A stretch of DNA of 30,258 nucleotides. Source: Zygophlyctis sp. KS116 (taxonomy: Eukaryota > Fungi > Chytridiomycota). The position numbers were made by a program, and so were the translations under genes. The notes below the pieces were generated by a model. That model worked only from the letters and a program-made list of their open reading frames with translations, did no database searches and was not told where the DNA came from. The stretch spans positions 1 to 30,258 of the forward strand of contig BAAFSQ010000107.1 in assembly GCA_054661495.1 (NCBI GenBank). The letters are read 5' to 3'. Shown piece after piece: positions 13,771 through 19,107 of this stretch (the stretch's first letter is position 1; every line of letters begins with the position of its first letter).

Positions 13771-13787
13771 GACGCGCTTCCGAAGAT
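13771..13787. repeat. Target-site duplication, left copy (gacgcgcttccgaagat)
   Basis: 17/17 identical to 19091-19107 and abuts the T-run. The last T is ambiguous with the tail. Confidence 0.97.
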
Positions 13788-16700
13788 TTTTTTTTTTTTT
13801 TTTTTTTTTTATTATTAGGCAATTACAATATCAAATAATCTACTTTAGCAATTCCATAAATCCTTTGATTGGATCTTATTAGTCCAATGGCAGAGGTTAT
13901 TTTATATGATGAATCCTAGTTTTTCTTCCTAAATCTAGAAAGATTCTAACCTACTCCTCCTTATTACAGAAAGATATTGTATGAAAGAATTTGATTTTTG
14001 ATTCCACTGGTCTTTAAGAGACAGACTTTATAGGATCACTATCAGTGCCGAATTGCCTATCGGTTTTTGAACCTTATTTTCAGACAGAACCCACCGTTTC
14101 ATTGAAACGCGGCCCTTCCCCACCTTCTTCATCCTCCGCCCCTACCATGGAAACCATAGCAGACATTGGATCCTCCCCTCGGTCATTCATGGTTTTATCC
14201 GGTGGGATTTTTAGCTTTATAGATATTTTTTGGGGTGATCCAAGTTTTAGTTTGATTTTTTTAAAATGATCTTGTTCATAGTGACCGGTCTGTTTTCTTC
14301 TACGTTTACTTGTAAGATTATTTGTTAAGGGAGATGAGTCTATATATGTGGTAGTTGTCCTTGGCTTATTCCTTTGGGATGTCACCCTGCTCCTGATCTT
14401 GGGCTTTAACCTAATCTTTTGAGGGTTCCTGGCGTGAGATGTTATCAGCATAATTGGTTTTGGTAATATTTTGGAAGTAGACAAGTTTATTTTCTTGGGA
14501 TGTTCTGCAAGTGAAGTGAATAGGGATATTTTGGAATAGTTTATTAATTTTATTTTCTTAATTGTGTGATGTTCTGAGTTAGATTTTCTTTTATTCTGAT
14601 GATTTTGTTCTTGCGATTGTTTAAGATCTTTACAGCGTTCTGTCCAAATGATTTTATAGACTGTAGTTAGCCAAGAATCAAGTACTAATTGTATCCATAG
14701 TTTTGTGTGATTTTTAGTTCTTTTGGTTTTCTTAAAACGGTCTATTAGAGTTTGATTGATAAGACCATATGCTGAAGGTAAAGTTGTGAATTCTTGGAAA
14801 TTTTGGAAGCCTAACAAGTACATGAGATGTTTTTTGGATGGTTTAAAATGTTGTTCATTGAGATTTTTATATGTTGGATTGGTGTTTAATCTTTCATTAA
14901 TAGACTCAATCGTGGTATTGTATAATTTCGATGAGATTGTTTTATTTTTATCGCAAGTTATTAAATGTTGTAGTGTTTCTTCTTCTTTTTTGCATCGGGG
15001 ACAAATTGAGTTTTCAGTATATGTATTATTGTTATAATTCCATTTTTTGACTAGGGACAGAACAGGTAGTTTTTTGGAGAAAAATCGGATGCGGAAACTC
15101 TGTTCCTTGACATCGGTTGCATCTAACGCATTTTCAAGATTCATTCCTTGATAGCAAACTTTAAGCGTATCTTTCCAATCAATATCTGAGAATTCCCATT
15201 TTTCATTCAAATTGGTTTCGATCAGTCCAAATTGTTTTTCTTGTCTGATTTTTTTCAAAAATTGATTTGGGTATCCATTTACTATGGTATTATTCTTAAA
15301 AAGGTATTCTTTAACCGAACCGATTCCTACTTGGTAGTTTTCAAGTGAGGATTCAGCGCCTAATTTGGCTAGTTCATCTGCTTGATCATTTTTAAGTAAG
15401 TTTGAGTGTCCTGCTACTTTTATGAATGTAGGAATTTTACTAAATTGTAACATGACTGCTTTAATTTGTTCGAGGATATACAAGTTTTTATATTTGAGTT
15501 CTGTTCGAGATGATTCTTTAACTAAGATATTTTTGCATCCATTAATGGCACATTGAGAATCCGTATATATTCTTATTGTCTGATTAGTATGACAAATGTC
15601 TAATGCTGCTAATATGCCAATTAATTCTGCTTTTGTTGATGAGGGATTTTGAGAGTCTACCTTTATTGATTGTTTGTGTATTATATTTTCTTGAGTGTCC
15701 CAGATTAGAAATCCTGCACCCATCTTATTGGATTCTTTTTTCAAACTTCCATCTGTCCATATTTCTAATTCTGTTTTTTCTTCTGGGATTTTATAAATCG
15801 TCTCTTGTTCTTCCTTTATGTAGATTGGAATTCTGTAATTAAATTGCTGGGAGTAATCATCTTGGCAGTTGCTCATTTTTTGCATAATGAATTGGTACCA
15901 ATTTGGAACTTTGTCAAATATTGCTTTTTTCAGTCTTGGCCAGTGGTTTGTGAGATCGTTAAACGATAATAATAATTGTTTGTTTGATGGAAGTTGCAAA
16001 TTACTAAGATTAAGATCAAACATGATTTTTCTTCCTGAGATATAATCCTCTAGAGGCATTTCAAGGAGAATTTGTTCAAATTGTCCGACATGTGTTTGTT
16101 TTATAGATAAGTTTTCCCTATGAAATAAGTTGATCACATACTTGATAAAAGAATTGTTTTGAAGTTTGACCGGTTTGTTTATAAGAGGGAGGGGGAATCT
16201 CATTTTAAGTCGTAGTTTTTCTAAAACAGCTCTAATAACTTTTGAGGTTATATTATCATTTCTTAAAAATACAGTCAAGTCGGTAATGATTGTATTTTTG
16301 TGGATGTTTTTTATTGAGAAGAGTTTGATGCCAAATTCGTTACAGTAGATGTAATCATTTTTAGTAGTTGGCGGTAATTTATTTTTAAGTCTGGTGAGTG
16401 ATCTTAACCTCTTGTCGACTTTTTCTAATTGATTGTCTGAGATTGGGATATATTGTAGACGATATTTAATTGTTGGTATGATCACTGTATTTATCAAATG
16501 AGTCATTATCTTTCCTGGGATGAATTTGTATTGAATTGCAACAATTTGATTGATTAACTCAGTCATTGTCTTTTTAATTGTTGCCTTATAATTACCATCC
16601 ATTGACCAGTATACACCCAAAATCCTTACAAGTTCAGTTTTTGGAACGAGTTGAATAGTTTGTTGATTGATTTTAAACTCATAGTTTGACTGATCATCAT

Positions 16701-19090
16701 TAGTTAGGATTTTAGATTTTGTTGCATTGAGTGACATTTTATGTGATTTTAAAAATAATTCAATATCCGCAAGCATGTCCTGTAAAACTTCTTTTCTATG
16801 CGAAATTGGATGAATATCATCCGCATAAGCGAGCACTGAGATATTTATTGTATGATATAATTTATATCCAATTTTGCTTTGTAAATTTGTTAAGAGTTCA
16901 TCGTAGAATATATTCCATAAAATAGGAGACATGGGATCTCCTTGAGGCAGTCCTCTTTCAGCGGAAAAAATATTCGTTCGTCCGGCTGGTGATTCAATGA
17001 AAACTTTTCTTGTTAGAATTTTTCGAACCTGATTTATAAATTGAGTTGGGACTTTAATTCTCTTGAGCGATTGTTCGATACTTTGGAAAGGAACTGAGTC
17101 ATATGCTTTTTGGACATCGAGCGAGGCCATGTAGAAGTTGTTTTTGGTCAGTTTGGCGTCGTCGATTAAAAGTCTTATGATCATCAGGGGATCTTTTGTA
17201 CTCATATCTTTGGTAAAACCAAAATTATTTCCTTTCAGAATGTCATTACTATTTATTATTTTTGTGATTCTATTGGTAAGCAATTGACTAAACAATTTTT
17301 TAAATGTGTCAATCAGTGTAATTGGTCTGGTTTTAGATAAGTCGCCATCAAATTGATCCGATTTAGGAATTAGAATTATCTTAGCTATGTTGAAAATTTC
17401 TGGGAATTGTTCTTCGGCCAACATTAAATTTAACATTTGTAATATTTTATGTAAATATTCCTGATTTGAGATTAATTTGATGAGATCATTTGAAATTTGT
17501 GATAATCCTGGAGTTTTATTCCTTCCTAGTTGTTGAATAGACTCTTGCATTTCTGCCATTGAAAATTTATCCGAAATATTTGTGTATATATTGTGGTCAA
17601 TATCATGTATAAAGTCCTGTTTCGATGTAATCTTTTGTCCATTTTCATTGTATATTTTTTTAAAATATGATTCAATCTCAGTATTGATTTCTAAATCGTC
17701 CATTATTATTTGATTTTCGGTTTTTTTTAGGTAGAAGGGAGTGGCAAAAGAGCGTTTATGATCAAAGATGTTCATAATGTGTTGTTTTTGAAAATGGATA
17801 AACTGTTTAGCTCTCCTATTCATAGCTTTCTTGATTGCTTTTCTTTTCCGTGAATGAATAAGTCGTTCGAGTTTTTCCTGAATAACAGTAAGATATTGGT
17901 ATATGTTCTCTGGAGAAGCTGAAGTTAATTCAAATGTTTTAATTTCTTCTATTAATTTGAAATTCTTTAATAAAATATAAATCAATTTCCACCTGAGTTC
18001 TAACTCTGTATTGTCGTCTTGAATCTGAAACAGCAGTTTATATGTTCCCTTGTATGCTTTTTTACATTTTGGTCTTTTATCTGGAATTGAATATTTAGGA
18101 TCTGTAAGTGTAACTTGAAATGAATTTTTAGCTGCTTGTAATAGATTTTTGTTTAGCATTTTGAATATGCATTCTATATTATTAGTGTTTGTCAGCTTTT
18201 TAAGAGATCTATTGAAATCATTTATCTCCTTTTTAGTGATGTCTTTCAGATTTATTTTAAATTTTGATTCGCTTTGAGGTGGTGGGTTGAAATTTTTTTG
18301 TGATAGATCAAAATTTAATGTAAGTTTTATAGGATGATGATGCAATCTCTGATCTAATTTACTGAGAATTGATATGTCGTTTGTATCCTTTGCTATATTG
18401 GGACTTACATATGTGAGATCAATTCGGGATTTGCTATCTAATTGTTCGTATGTGTACTCCATTTTATGAGGGTGTAGAAATCTGTAAATATCTATTAATG
18501 TGCAACTTTGTGTTAGAAATGGATTCAAATTTTTCTTTGGTGTGACATATGAACGGTTTCTGTCTAGATCATCGTTCGGACATTCGTTGAGATCTCCTTG
18601 TAAGATTACAGATGTCTCATTGTCTTTATCTTGTATAGATTCAAATATAAATTGTTTTATTTTTTTAATGATATTTTTATAGTCCGAGTTCGATCTGGAG
18701 GGTGAATAGATTGCAATATATATGATCTTATACATATTATTTTTTAAAGTTATTGCTATTCCATGGCCATTTAATTTTCTAATATTTGATATATATTTTT
18801 TCAGTGGTTTTTGAATGAAGAGCATTACACCTTTTGCATGGGTAGAATGGTTTTCATTATTATGATCTGTGAAACATAGATAGTCTTTATTAGTGTAGAA
18901 AACTTTTTTGGGTTTGAACGGGATAGAAGAGTCGTTAACCCGGAATGTAAACAACTTTACACAAAACTCGGTAGTGTTTACATTCCAGGCGGAGACATGC
19001 TCCTTTACTCTTCTATATATACAATAGAATACCTTTTCATAGCTATTTTTAAATTTCTTGTCGACGATCATTTTCAGTTTTTAATTTTTT
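13788..19090 (-). mobile_element. Non-LTR retrotransposon (LINE), ~5.3 kb, single ORF, poly(A) tail, 17-bp TSD
   Basis: Plus-strand T-run 13787-13810 equals a minus-strand poly(A). About 270 nt 3' UTR, intronless 1663-aa ORF, A-rich sense strand, flanking direct repeats. Confidence 0.97.
14080..19071 (-). CDS. LINE polyprotein: APE endonuclease, reverse transcriptase, RNase H, CCHC finger, basic tail
   Basis: APE: KGVMLF, IYSP, QGDLN, SRIDLTYVS. RT: KTPG, RPITL, NNFGF, LDVQKAYDSV, GLPQGDPMSP, YADD, RILG. RNase H: WTDGS, KAEL, YTDSQ, VAGHS..NDQADELAK. Finger: CPRC..ETLQHLITC. Confidence 0.97.
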   Translation of the reverse strand: MIVDKKFKNSYEKVFYCIYRRVKEHVSAWNVNTTEFCVKLFTFRVNDSSIPFKPKKVFYTNKDYLCFTDHNNENHSTHAKGVMLFIQKPLKKYISNIRKLNGHGIAITLKNNMYKIIYIAIYSPSRSNSDYKNIIKKIKQFIFESIQDKDNETSVILQGDLNECPNDDLDRNRSYVTPKKNLNPFLTQSCTLIDIYRFLHPHKMEYTYEQLDSKSRIDLTYVSPNIAKDTNDISILSKLDQRLHHHPIKLTLNFDLSQKNFNPPPQSESKFKINLKDITKKEINDFNRSLKKLTNTNNIECIFKMLNKNLLQAAKNSFQVTLTDPKYSIPDKRPKCKKAYKGTYKLLFQIQDDNTELELRWKLIYILLKNFKLIEEIKTFELTSASPENIYQYLTVIQEKLERLIHSRKRKAIKKAMNRRAKQFIHFQKQHIMNIFDHKRSFATPFYLKKTENQIIMDDLEINTEIESYFKKIYNENGQKITSKQDFIHDIDHNIYTNISDKFSMAEMQESIQQLGRNKTPGLSQISNDLIKLISNQEYLHKILQMLNLMLAEEQFPEIFNIAKIILIPKSDQFDGDLSKTRPITLIDTFKKLFSQLLTNRITKIINSNDILKGNNFGFTKDMSTKDPLMIIRLLIDDAKLTKNNFYMASLDVQKAYDSVPFQSIEQSLKRIKVPTQFINQVRKILTRKVFIESPAGRTNIFSAERGLPQGDPMSPILWNIFYDELLTNLQSKIGYKLYHTINISVLAYADDIHPISHRKEVLQDMLADIELFLKSHKMSLNATKSKILTNDDQSNYEFKINQQTIQLVPKTELVRILGVYWSMDGNYKATIKKTMTELINQIVAIQYKFIPGKIMTHLINTVIIPTIKYRLQYIPISDNQLEKVDKRLRSLTRLKNKLPPTTKNDYIYCNEFGIKLFSIKNIHKNTIITDLTVFLRNDNITSKVIRAVLEKLRLKMRFPLPLINKPVKLQNNSFIKYVINLFHRENLSIKQTHVGQFEQILLEMPLEDYISGRKIMFDLNLSNLQLPSNKQLLLSFNDLTNHWPRLKKAIFDKVPNWYQFIMQKMSNCQDDYSQQFNYRIPIYIKEEQETIYKIPEEKTELEIWTDGSLKKESNKMGAGFLIWDTQENIIHKQSIKVDSQNPSSTKAELIGILAALDICHTNQTIRIYTDSQCAINGCKNILVKESSRTELKYKNLYILEQIKAVMLQFSKIPTFIKVAGHSNLLKNDQADELAKLGAESSLENYQVGIGSVKEYLFKNNTIVNGYPNQFLKKIRQEKQFGLIETNLNEKWEFSDIDWKDTLKVCYQGMNLENALDATDVKEQSFRIRFFSKKLPVLSLVKKWNYNNNTYTENSICPRCKKEEETLQHLITCDKNKTISSKLYNTTIESINERLNTNPTYKNLNEQHFKPSKKHLMYLLGFQNFQEFTTLPSAYGLINQTLIDRFKKTKRTKNHTKLWIQLVLDSWLTTVYKIIWTERCKDLKQSQEQNHQNKRKSNSEHHTIKKIKLINYSKISLFTSLAEHPKKINLSTSKILPKPIMLITSHARNPQKIRLKPKIRSRVTSQRNKPRTTTTYIDSSPLTNNLTSKRRRKQTGHYEQDHFKKIKLKLGSPQKISIKLKIPPDKTMNDRGEDPMSAMVSMVGAEDEEGGEGPRFNETVGSV

Positions 19091-19107
19091 GACGCGCTTC
19101 CGAAGAT
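19091..19107. repeat. Target-site duplication, right copy
   Basis: Identical to 13771-13787 and directly followed by the ATG at 19108. Confidence 0.97.

Follow-up and report, generated by a model that had tools for sequence, protein, structure and literature searches.

The C-terminal tail of MLV integrase binds the ET domain of BRD2/3/4 and has been proposed to tether integration near transcription starts (PMC4027182). Ligands of BET ET domains share the consensus K-phi-K-phi (PMC11939847), those of the Taf14 ET domain the consensus phi-x-phi-+-phi-+-phi, and a Tfg1 fragment with two motifs binds the Taf14 ET domain more tightly than either motif alone (PMC7442819). Chromoviruses, which are Ty3/gypsy elements, carry a chromodomain at the C-terminus of their integrase (PMC2864245; Gao et al. 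2008, cited in PMC5348765). Among the non-LTR elements, the TRE elements of Dictyostelium, whose genome is compact, direct their insertion to tRNA genes (PMC5006619). Tethering by proteins has been amply documented in retroviruses and LTR elements, yet seldom in non-LTR elements, and the insertion-site choice of LINEs beyond the sequence preference of their endonuclease is a largely open question. No paper that we found describes an ET-binding or chromodomain tail in a LINE.

The LINE described here lies in a 30,258-nt stretch of DNA from the freshwater chytrid Zygophlyctis sp. KS116 (contig BAAFSQ010000107.1; hereafter the window) and is a young element, which lake populations hold as well. 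Like the Dictyostelium TREs it resides in a gene-dense genome, and for both a role of host chromatin or transcription proteins in steering insertion, beyond that of the target sequence, is proposed; in Dictyostelium, however, the host factor is the Pol III machinery, the element protein is a different one, and no K-phi-K-phi tail has been described. The C-terminal tail of the LINE protein shows the same basic/hydrophobic alternation as the Taf14 and BET ET ligands, with one exact Taf14-type match, and Tfg1 offers a precedent for its multivalency. While those ligands are chromatin proteins of the host, the tail belongs to the protein of a mobile element.

The LINE copy and its C-terminal tail

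Reverse transcriptase, RNase H, CCHC knuckle, poly(A) and target-site duplication, the marks of an APE-type non-LTR retrotransposon, are all present in the window element (Table 1), and its ORF matches Pfam RVT_1 at 7e-35 and RNase_H at 6e-17. The N-terminus of this ORF has no Pfam match to an apurinic-type endonuclease at E <= 0.01; Exo_endo_phos is matched in the relatives P0026, P0031 and P0119. The copy has a 5' UTR of 19 nt and lacks an ORF1. Pfam returned no match for the neighbouring host ORF, nor did Rfam for the window, and no empty-site joint for the insertion was seen among the contigs searched, which says nothing on polymorphism. When the C-terminal 313 aa were used in a search for homologous proteins, the sole match was a copy of this element with 99% identity. 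In a scan of metagenomes, a 17-nt word taken at the end of the 3' UTR hit 109 loci, none of them with extended similarity to the element; we rejected these loci as element copies and regard them as chance matches.

Table 1. Features of the LINE insertion in window coordinates
Feature	Position	Strand	Remarks
Full-length single-ORF LINE insertion, 5304 bp	13787..19090	-	Identical 17-nt target-site duplications and 24-nt poly(A); Pfam RVT_1, RNase_H
Target-site duplication, 3' copy; first A common to poly(A)	13771..13787	-	Identical to 19091-19107
Poly(A) tail, 24 nt	13787..13810	-	
3' UTR	13811..14079	-	DNA-level conservation with other LINE lineages
ORF, 1663 aa	14080..19071	-	Endonuclease-like N-terminus, RT, RNase H, CCHC knuckle, helical domain, disordered tail (predicted)
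C-terminal tail, 164 aa, predicted disordered	14083..14574	-	AF2 without secondary structure, pLDDT 50-60
Acidic, Gly-rich C-terminal end	14083..14193	-	Similar ends in lineages B, C, D
P-P-D-K motif	14194..14205	-	Similar [KR]-x-P-P-D-[KR] in relatives
Motif block H3 (K-K-I-K-L-K-L, G-S-P-Q, K-I-S-I-K-L-K-I)	14206..14265	-	One full Taf14-type match
Motif block H2 (hydrophobic strand I-M-L-I-T-S, turn with N-P, then K-I-R-L-K-P-K-I-R)	14392..14457	-	
Motif M2 (P-K-K-I-N-L-S)	14479..14499	-	Clade consensus K-[KR]-I-[KR]-L-x-L
Motif block H1 (I-K-K-I-K-L-I-N, two residues, K-I-S-L-F-T)	14515..14562	-	Position M1 of the clade alignment
Conserved helical C-terminal domain	14575..14850	-	Ends in W-L-x-x-V-Y-K-x-I-W-x-x-R-C block; AF2 helices, pLDDT 75-90
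CCHC zinc knuckle (C-x2-C-x9-H-x3-C), residues 1357-1373	14953..15003	-	
Target-site duplication, 5' copy	19091..19107	-	Abuts ATG (19108, + strand) of host ORF

Over 13993-14272 and 13796-13892 the element shares 65-78% DNA identity with diverged LINE lineages, and because its DNA is conserved between lineages we read the 3' UTR as probably the RNA 3' end recognised by the reverse transcriptase. Synonymous divergence is reduced in the last 34 codons of the ORF, which adjoin the 3' UTR, and the acidic, Gly-rich end (dS only 0.55, dN/dS 0.66) probably overlaps this RNA-level constraint.

The original prediction placed the tail directly after the CCHC finger. The tail does lie C-terminal of the knuckle, but a helical domain of about 125 aa separates the two, and the disordered tail is predicted to begin near residue 1500. 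The AF2 model of the tail, for which an 18-sequence alignment served as input, is a prediction only. Basic residues (K+R) account for 24% of the tail over 14194-14574, I/L/V for 22% and S/T/N/Q/P for 36%. Many relatives (e.g. P0013, P0048, P0072, P0081, P0088, P0093) carry [KR]-x-P-P-D-[KR] near the C-terminus. A small folded beta domain made of the alternating strands was considered and rejected, as AF2 gave no structure and the motifs differ between lineages in number and spacing.

The motif array and its conservation

The motif strings span residues ~1504-1622 (window 14206-14562), and all five strings quoted in the original prediction of a motif array in a basic tail occur in the ORF translation. 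Five matches to [KR][ILV][KR][ILV] fall into the last 184 aa, compared with two in the other 1480 aa. Among 20,000 residue shuffles of the tail, which averaged 0.25 motifs, none reached five; since such shuffles keep the amino-acid and hence the codon composition, A-rich codon bias, which had been named as a possible source of the motif frequency, fails to account for this number. Independent enrichment in motifs is also seen in lineages C, D and E of this genome (P <= 0.0025). All five tail motifs fit the K-phi-K-phi consensus of BET ET ligands. The Taf14-type consensus has one match in the tail, I-S-I-K-L-K-I, with L-S-L-K-I-K-I in lineage B; per 1000 aa, this consensus is matched 0.77 times in tails vs 0.14 times in the remainder of the proteins. 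K-phi-K-phi is a short and degenerate pattern, and roughly every second motif instance conforms to the classical NLS pattern K-[KR]-x-[KR] as well; both observations count against an ET tether.

Within this genome the motifs recur in no fewer than seven diverged LINE lineages. H1 is kept in lineages A, B, C, G and H and is aligned in the relatives as well, and lineage B conserves both H2 and H3, the latter with a dN/dS of 0.22. Motifs had been expected to stay conserved while the spacers diverge, and this is what we observe: between lineages A and B, identity reaches 80% in motif columns and 35% elsewhere (Fisher P = 6e-6), the motif blocks show dN/dS values of 0.16 and 0.22, their synonymous sites being nearly saturated, and the spacer is near neutral (pN 0.55). 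From these sequence comparisons we conclude that the motifs are under purifying selection at the protein level and are no by-product of composition. The tails of 61 metagenomic relatives together hold 38 motifs, where 7.1 +/- 2.8 would be expected, and 22 of these tails have at least one motif (6.2 expected). In the M2 alignment, whose 18 sequences were picked for carrying motifs and in which aligners slide such motifs together, Ile is found in 17 of 18 sequences, a hydrophobic residue at +2 in 16 and at +4 in 15. That the best-conserved motif residues are hydrophobic fits a ligand lying in a hydrophobic groove; importin binding does not call for such residues.

Relatives, host ET domains and insertion sites

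We retrieved 118 relatives with the helical C-terminal domain. Pfam Chromo domains occupy the tail position in P0011 (full length), P0012 and P0019, that is, in three of 57 relatives' tails, and none of the three carries a K-phi-K-phi motif. The presence of chromodomains at this same position suggests that the tail is a swappable chromatin-targeting module. Pfam finds no Chromo domain in the window ORF, and the chromodomain tail of P0011, used as a query, has no match in this genome. The motif array is not universal: of 45 broader relatives whose tail type was scored on a tree of the C-terminal domain, 25 lack the strict motif. This tree is star-like and does not resolve an ancestral from a repeated origin of the array.

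Bdf1- or Taf14-like readers had been proposed as docking partners in the host. ET domains are indeed encoded at two loci with PF17035 matches, C16 (bromodomain plus ET) and C750, but a Taf14-like protein combining YEATS and ET was not found in the assembly, which is possibly incomplete; the ORF at the sole YEATS locus found, C407, ends in a coiled-coil-looking stretch without an ET match. The C16 ET domain adjoins the bromodomain, matches PF17035 at 47 bits and bears an acidic/hydrophobic strand, E-V-E-I-D-M-D. It is divergent; phmmer against PDB sequences matched no chain and gave only spurious polyubiquitin sums. One co-fold of this domain (L034:1477-1713, minus strand) with block H3 (14182-14289, minus strand) gave a score of 0.09 (mark 0.34) and counts neither way. 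In the host Snf2 homologue the bromodomain is followed by a C-terminal L-K-V-R-L-N-F, which suggests that the host possesses motifs of its own akin to those of the LINE.

The landing site of this copy had been taken to fit docking at a promoter. Its duplicated target is the 17 nt directly upstream of a host start codon, and another copy (C44) ends 1 nt before the ATG of a DUF2306 gene; the fit is weak, however, as the intergenic spacer before the insertion measured only ~100 bp. Among 13 3' junctions, all of them in very short intergenic spacers and too few for statistical power, five lie roughly 0-210 nt from the 3' end of a gene that they face, and five or six lie 0-300 nt from a 5' end. Start codons are abutted by two of the 13, and this small survey shows no preference for start codons. 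With spacers this short, any tolerated insertion comes to lie near a gene end. Most LINE copies are on contigs of 1-3 kb, and both flanks are known for the window copy alone. The nick site of the window copy is not T-rich.

A candidate chromatin tether and its alternatives

The best single explanation of the tail, and one that we put forward tentatively, is that its motifs are candidate ET-domain ligands that tether the LINE protein to chromatin. The tail would act as an intrinsically disordered array of K-phi-K-phi short linear motifs, each of which could dock as a strand on a host protein by beta-strand addition, the likeliest receptor being the ET domain of chytrid BET/Bdf1-like bromodomain proteins. 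The RT/endonuclease protein with its bound RNA would thereby be held on acetylated chromatin near promoters as target-primed reverse transcription starts; several motifs would provide higher avidity, and a T-rich target would not be required. The multivalent ET-binding tail that had been predicted is consistent with the consensus match, the predicted disorder, the conservation, the host ET domains and the chromodomains of relatives. Both the ET domain as partner and the steering of insertion by docking are what we infer, and the motifs may guide insertion. An ET tether would explain how the LINE survives in a genome with intergenic spacers of ~100 bp. The ET-ligand-like array and the relatives' chromodomains together make a concrete hypothesis that is testable with peptides.

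The same motifs might instead dock on some non-ET partner in the host, such as another beta-strand-accepting fold, an AHD of the AF9/ENL type, a histone chaperone or a replication factor, and serve targeting or another step of retrotransposition. A conserved hydrophobic/basic motif in a disordered tail does indicate docking without naming the receptor, and the divergence of the host ET domain and a co-fold without verdict leave room for such a partner. We nevertheless regard it as unlikely since, to our knowledge, the exact basic/hydrophobic alternation found here has no well-described readers apart from ET-type domains, which the host has. It seems quite unlikely that the tail serves mainly as a nuclear (or nucleolar) localisation signal in several copies, although its high content of K+R would suit one: K-K-I-K occurs twice (two of the five motifs) and K-R-R-R-K once, both fitting K-[KR]-x-[KR], the same pattern is fitted by eight of 16 aligned M2 instances, and K-R-I-K-L resembles the c-Myc NLS core. 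Yet Ile and Leu, and not the basic positions, are best conserved, the double-basic start is missing in many instances (I-K-I-K-L-K-L, I-R-I-R-L-T-L, L-K-I-T-L-T-L), and the alternation extends over 6-8 residues, more than an NLS requires. Separate basic clusters (N-K-R-K-S, K-R-R-R-K) could already give import, and the chromodomains at the tail position in relatives would be left unexplained.

The lack of an ORF1, together with the very short 5' UTR, could also point to a basic nucleic-acid-binding or chaperone region that replaces the missing ORF1 protein and aids RNP assembly or priming. Such a role would agree with a strongly basic, disordered tail and with an ORF end that overlaps a region of RNA-level constraint, but non-specific binding does not need strictly alternating, conserved Ile/Leu; moreover, the motifs are set off by Pro-rich turns, and the equally basic spacer is almost neutral, which makes this role improbable. 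Finally, the LINE sense strand is A-rich and codons for K, I, L and N are A/T-rich, so that the array could be imagined as a functionless composition or slippage artefact of a low-complexity 3' coding end. The outcome of the composition-keeping shuffles, the purifying selection on the motif blocks and the conservation of the motifs across lineages and metagenomic relatives make this extremely improbable.

As in the chromoviruses, the integrating protein of the relatives P0011, P0012 and P0019 carries a C-terminal chromatin-reader module, whereas the tail of the window LINE has no chromodomain, and chromoviruses are LTR elements. It is conceivable, though in our view doubtful, that this chytrid LINE clade picks its insertion niche by exchangeable C-terminal modules: either a multivalent array of ET ligands that would hijack BET proteins at active promoters, or a chromodomain pair that would read histone methylation. 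These would be the same two solutions as those of gammaretrovirus and chromovirus integrases, neither of which would have had a precedent among non-LTR elements.

With MLV integrase the LINE protein shares a C-terminal tail, disordered by prediction, on the integrating enzyme. The stretch closest to the MLV tail is H2, where a K-I-R-L core follows N-P and has a hydrophobic strand upstream. The parallel that had been drawn between RNPQKIRL and MLV integrase thus holds for the N-P and the P-Q-K-I-R core, but not for the full MLV consensus W-x7-P-L-K-I/L-R: the LINE has L-x7-P-Q-K-I-R, with four of the five core letters and Leu for Trp at -8. Unlike MLV, the LINE is a non-LTR element that uses target-primed reverse transcription without an integrase, and its tail has several motifs, with putative binding and targeting, where that of MLV has one. 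If the ET-tether model is true, these motifs would form a natural set for steering retrotransposon-based insertion tools, and the tail would represent a clear convergence with MLV integrase.

Structure of the element and of its C-terminal tail

The window copy, carried by contig C107 of the 12.7-Mb assembly, is a full-length LINE of 5304 bp with a single ORF, and a young one, because it is flanked by identical 17-nt duplications, terminates in a 24-nt poly(A), has a 5' UTR of only 19 nt (window 19072-19090) and lacks an ORF1. The stretch is present in many freshwater, lake and estuary metagenomes. Among contigs from public runs, the 5' junction of the LINE recurs in another freshwater metagenome and a second full-length 5' end appears with a different flank; a 3' UTR fragment of 270 nt was recovered from a lake metatranscriptome. 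All of these are consistent with a family of recent activity, although we do not take them as proof of transcription. Two further copies look rearranged or fragmented: one on contig C649 (locus L002, 241-994) is ~88-91% identical, with a frameshifted tail and similarity that ends at window 14195, and a separate copy of window 13900-14171 on contig C189 is 96% identical.

Features of the LINE in the window
Feature	Position	Strand	Basis
LINE ORF, uninterrupted, 1663 aa	14080-19071	minus	translation
RVT_1	residues 568-819 of LINE ORF	minus	Pfam match
RNase_H	residues 1101-1239 of LINE ORF	minus	Pfam match
CCHC knuckle	residues 1357-1373 of LINE ORF	minus	
Motif block H1	14515-14562	minus	
Motif block M2	14479-14499	minus	
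Motif block H2	14392-14457	minus	
Motif block H3	14206-14265	minus	
P-P-D-K motif, then acidic Gly-rich end	P-P-D-K at 14194-14205	minus	
Target-site duplications, 17 nt, identical	13771-13787 and 19091-19107		

All motif strings quoted in the original prediction are found in the ORF translation. The tail does lie C-terminal of the CCHC knuckle, as had been proposed, but it does not follow it directly, since a conserved helical domain of ~125 aa intervenes (pLDDT 75-90; AlphaFold2, 18-sequence alignment). In the same model the region from about residue 1500 to the C-terminus is without predicted secondary structure (pLDDT 50-60), and the tail, composed of 24% K+R, 22% I/L/V and 36% S/T/N/Q/P, is thus best seen as a disordered region bearing short linear motifs. 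Near the extreme C-terminus, [KR]-x-P-P-D-[KR] recurs in many of the clade's tails, which otherwise do not align (relatives P0013, P0048, P0072, P0081, P0088, P0093 and others).

Between LINE lineages, the ORF end and 3' UTR (window 13796-14272) are 65-78% identical at the DNA level, with a GC of 0.42 compared to about 0.30 in the remaining element. When the window copy (lineage A) is compared with lineage B, dS across the last 34 codons is unusually low, at 0.55, suggesting that an RNA-level constraint overlaps the coding sequence at this 3' end. This segment is probably the RNA 3' end that the reverse transcriptase recognises.

Selection on the tail motifs

The motif array is real, conserved and selected. 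Five copies of the strict motif [KR][ILV][KR][ILV] fall within the final 184 aa of the ORF, against two in the remaining 1480 aa; when the tail residues were shuffled 20,000 times, the mean count was 0.25 and no shuffle reached five. A-rich codon bias, which the original prediction had itself named as a possible refutation, therefore does not account for the count. Lineages C, D and E are each independently enriched (P <= 0.0025), and this clade has at least seven diverged lineages in the genome, which share 30-90% identity in the preceding domain; motifs of this type occur in every one that retains the tail. The first check originally proposed, that motifs be kept while spacers diverge, came out in favour: between lineages A and B, motif columns are 80% identical compared to 35% elsewhere (Fisher P = 6e-6), and, with synonymous sites close to saturation, dN/dS is 0.16 in the H1-H2 block and 0.22 in H3 plus P-P-D-K, whereas the ~45-aa spacer between H2 and H3 is essentially unalignable (pN 0.55). 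As read from these substitution patterns, the constraint on the motif blocks is protein-level.

Among alternatives to an ET-binding role, a nuclear localization signal is a serious one: K-K-I-K and K-R-I-K-L both conform to K-[KR]-x-[KR] and resemble the core of the c-Myc localization signal; yet the hydrophobic positions are the best conserved, many motif instances lack the double-basic start, the alternation extends over 6-8 residues, and import could be supplied by plain basic clusters at other places in the tail. It is also possible that the tail binds nucleic acid and replaces the missing ORF1 protein, but this leaves the conserved Ile/Leu unexplained beside a nearly neutral, equally basic spacer. 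The motifs may, moreover, dock on a partner other than ET. A pure composition artefact is contradicted by the shuffles, the A-versus-B conservation, the dN/dS values and the motif excess in relatives' tails.

Tails of related elements

With the helical domain as query, an exhaustive search that used no profile retrieved 118 relatives, mostly metagenomic. The tails of 61 contain 38 strict motifs (7.1 +/- 2.8 expected from shuffles), at least one being present in 22 tails compared to 6.2 expected, and the tails have 5.95 motifs per 1000 aa, compared to 1.17 for the remainder of these proteins. An alignment of 18 members, which were selected for carrying motifs and which aligners tend to slide together at such motifs, gives the second-motif consensus K-[KR]-I-[KR]-L-x-L, with Ile in 17/18 and a hydrophobic residue at +2 in 16/18 and at +4 in 15/18. 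The array is not universal, the strict motif being absent from 25 of 45 relatives scored on the domain tree, whose star-like topology fits one origin as well as several.

Three relatives (P0011, P0012 and P0019) carry one or two Pfam chromodomains each at the equivalent tail position and lack the K-phi-K-phi motif; Chromo was the sole family matched in a Pfam scan of 57 tails. Finding a chromatin reader at this position argues pointedly, if circumstantially, for a chromatin-targeting role of the tail in this clade. Our literature search found no description of a chromodomain in a non-LTR element. P0011 is a full-length ORF of 1693 aa on an ENA metagenome contig (L038:2190-7271), where, unlike in the window LINE, two called genes (440 and 75 aa) lie upstream. 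Following a lone motif of the R-I-R-L-T-L type, the tails of P0054 and P0061 have in common a conserved ~40-aa segment without repeats (G-N-x-W-Y ... I-R-D-I-N-R-V-H-R); this segment may be another small tail module.

Insertion sites and likeness to ET ligands

The window copy duplicated the 17 nt immediately 5' of a start codon (ATG, 19108) that belongs to a host ORF without Pfam match, at a nick site that is not T-rich; the pre-insertion spacer was ~100 bp, comprising 86 nt to the stop of an upstream WD40-like gene plus the duplication. Our survey covered 13 3' junctions, with both flanks known for the window copy alone and intergenic spacers generally very short. On C44, a single base separates the poly(A) from the start codon of a DUF2306 gene (L007:1500-1510). 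The window and C44 insertions are independent, belong to different lineages and both lie 0-17 nt from a host start codon. Copies on C422, C144 and C292 are situated upstream of kinase, STE-type factor and GDI genes, at distances of 120 to about 300 nt, the junctions on C107, C773, C539, C442 and C55 face gene 3' ends, and the remainder are within other repeats or uninformative. A search for extra junctions in metagenomes returned chance matches only.

The host has two ET loci, one on C16 that adjoins a bromodomain and has an E-V-E-I-D-M-D strand, and an intron-split one on C750. Docking on Bdf1- or Taf14-like readers had originally been proposed; the single YEATS gene detected lacks any ET match and finishes in a coiled-coil-looking segment, and therefore looks Yaf9-like rather than Taf14-like. 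Downstream of its bromodomain, the host Snf2/Sth1 homologue (contig C12, minus strand, L043:625-1029) terminates in L-K-V-R-L-N-F, a motif of the ET-ligand type whose position resembles that of the BRG1 motif, which suggests that an ET-ligand system exists in this fungus.

BET ET domains recognise K-phi-K-phi, with the ligand contributing an extra strand at the alpha2-alpha3 loop of the domain (PMC11939847), and the window tail holds five such matches. It also holds one exact match to the Taf14-type consensus, phi-x-phi-+-phi-+-phi, within H3 and retained in lineage B; a Tfg1 fragment with two motifs binds Taf14 ET more tightly than either motif alone (PMC7442819). We tentatively regard an ET-binding tether as the best single explanation of the LINE tail, unproven and held at somewhat less than even confidence. 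Our literature search found nothing on ET-ligand tails in LINEs. The proposed parallel with MLV integrase, whose ET-binding motif is W-x7-P-L-K-I/L-R (PMC4027182), holds in part at the level of sequence likeness: H2 offers the partial match P-Q-K-I-R, but has Leu at -8 in place of the Trp.
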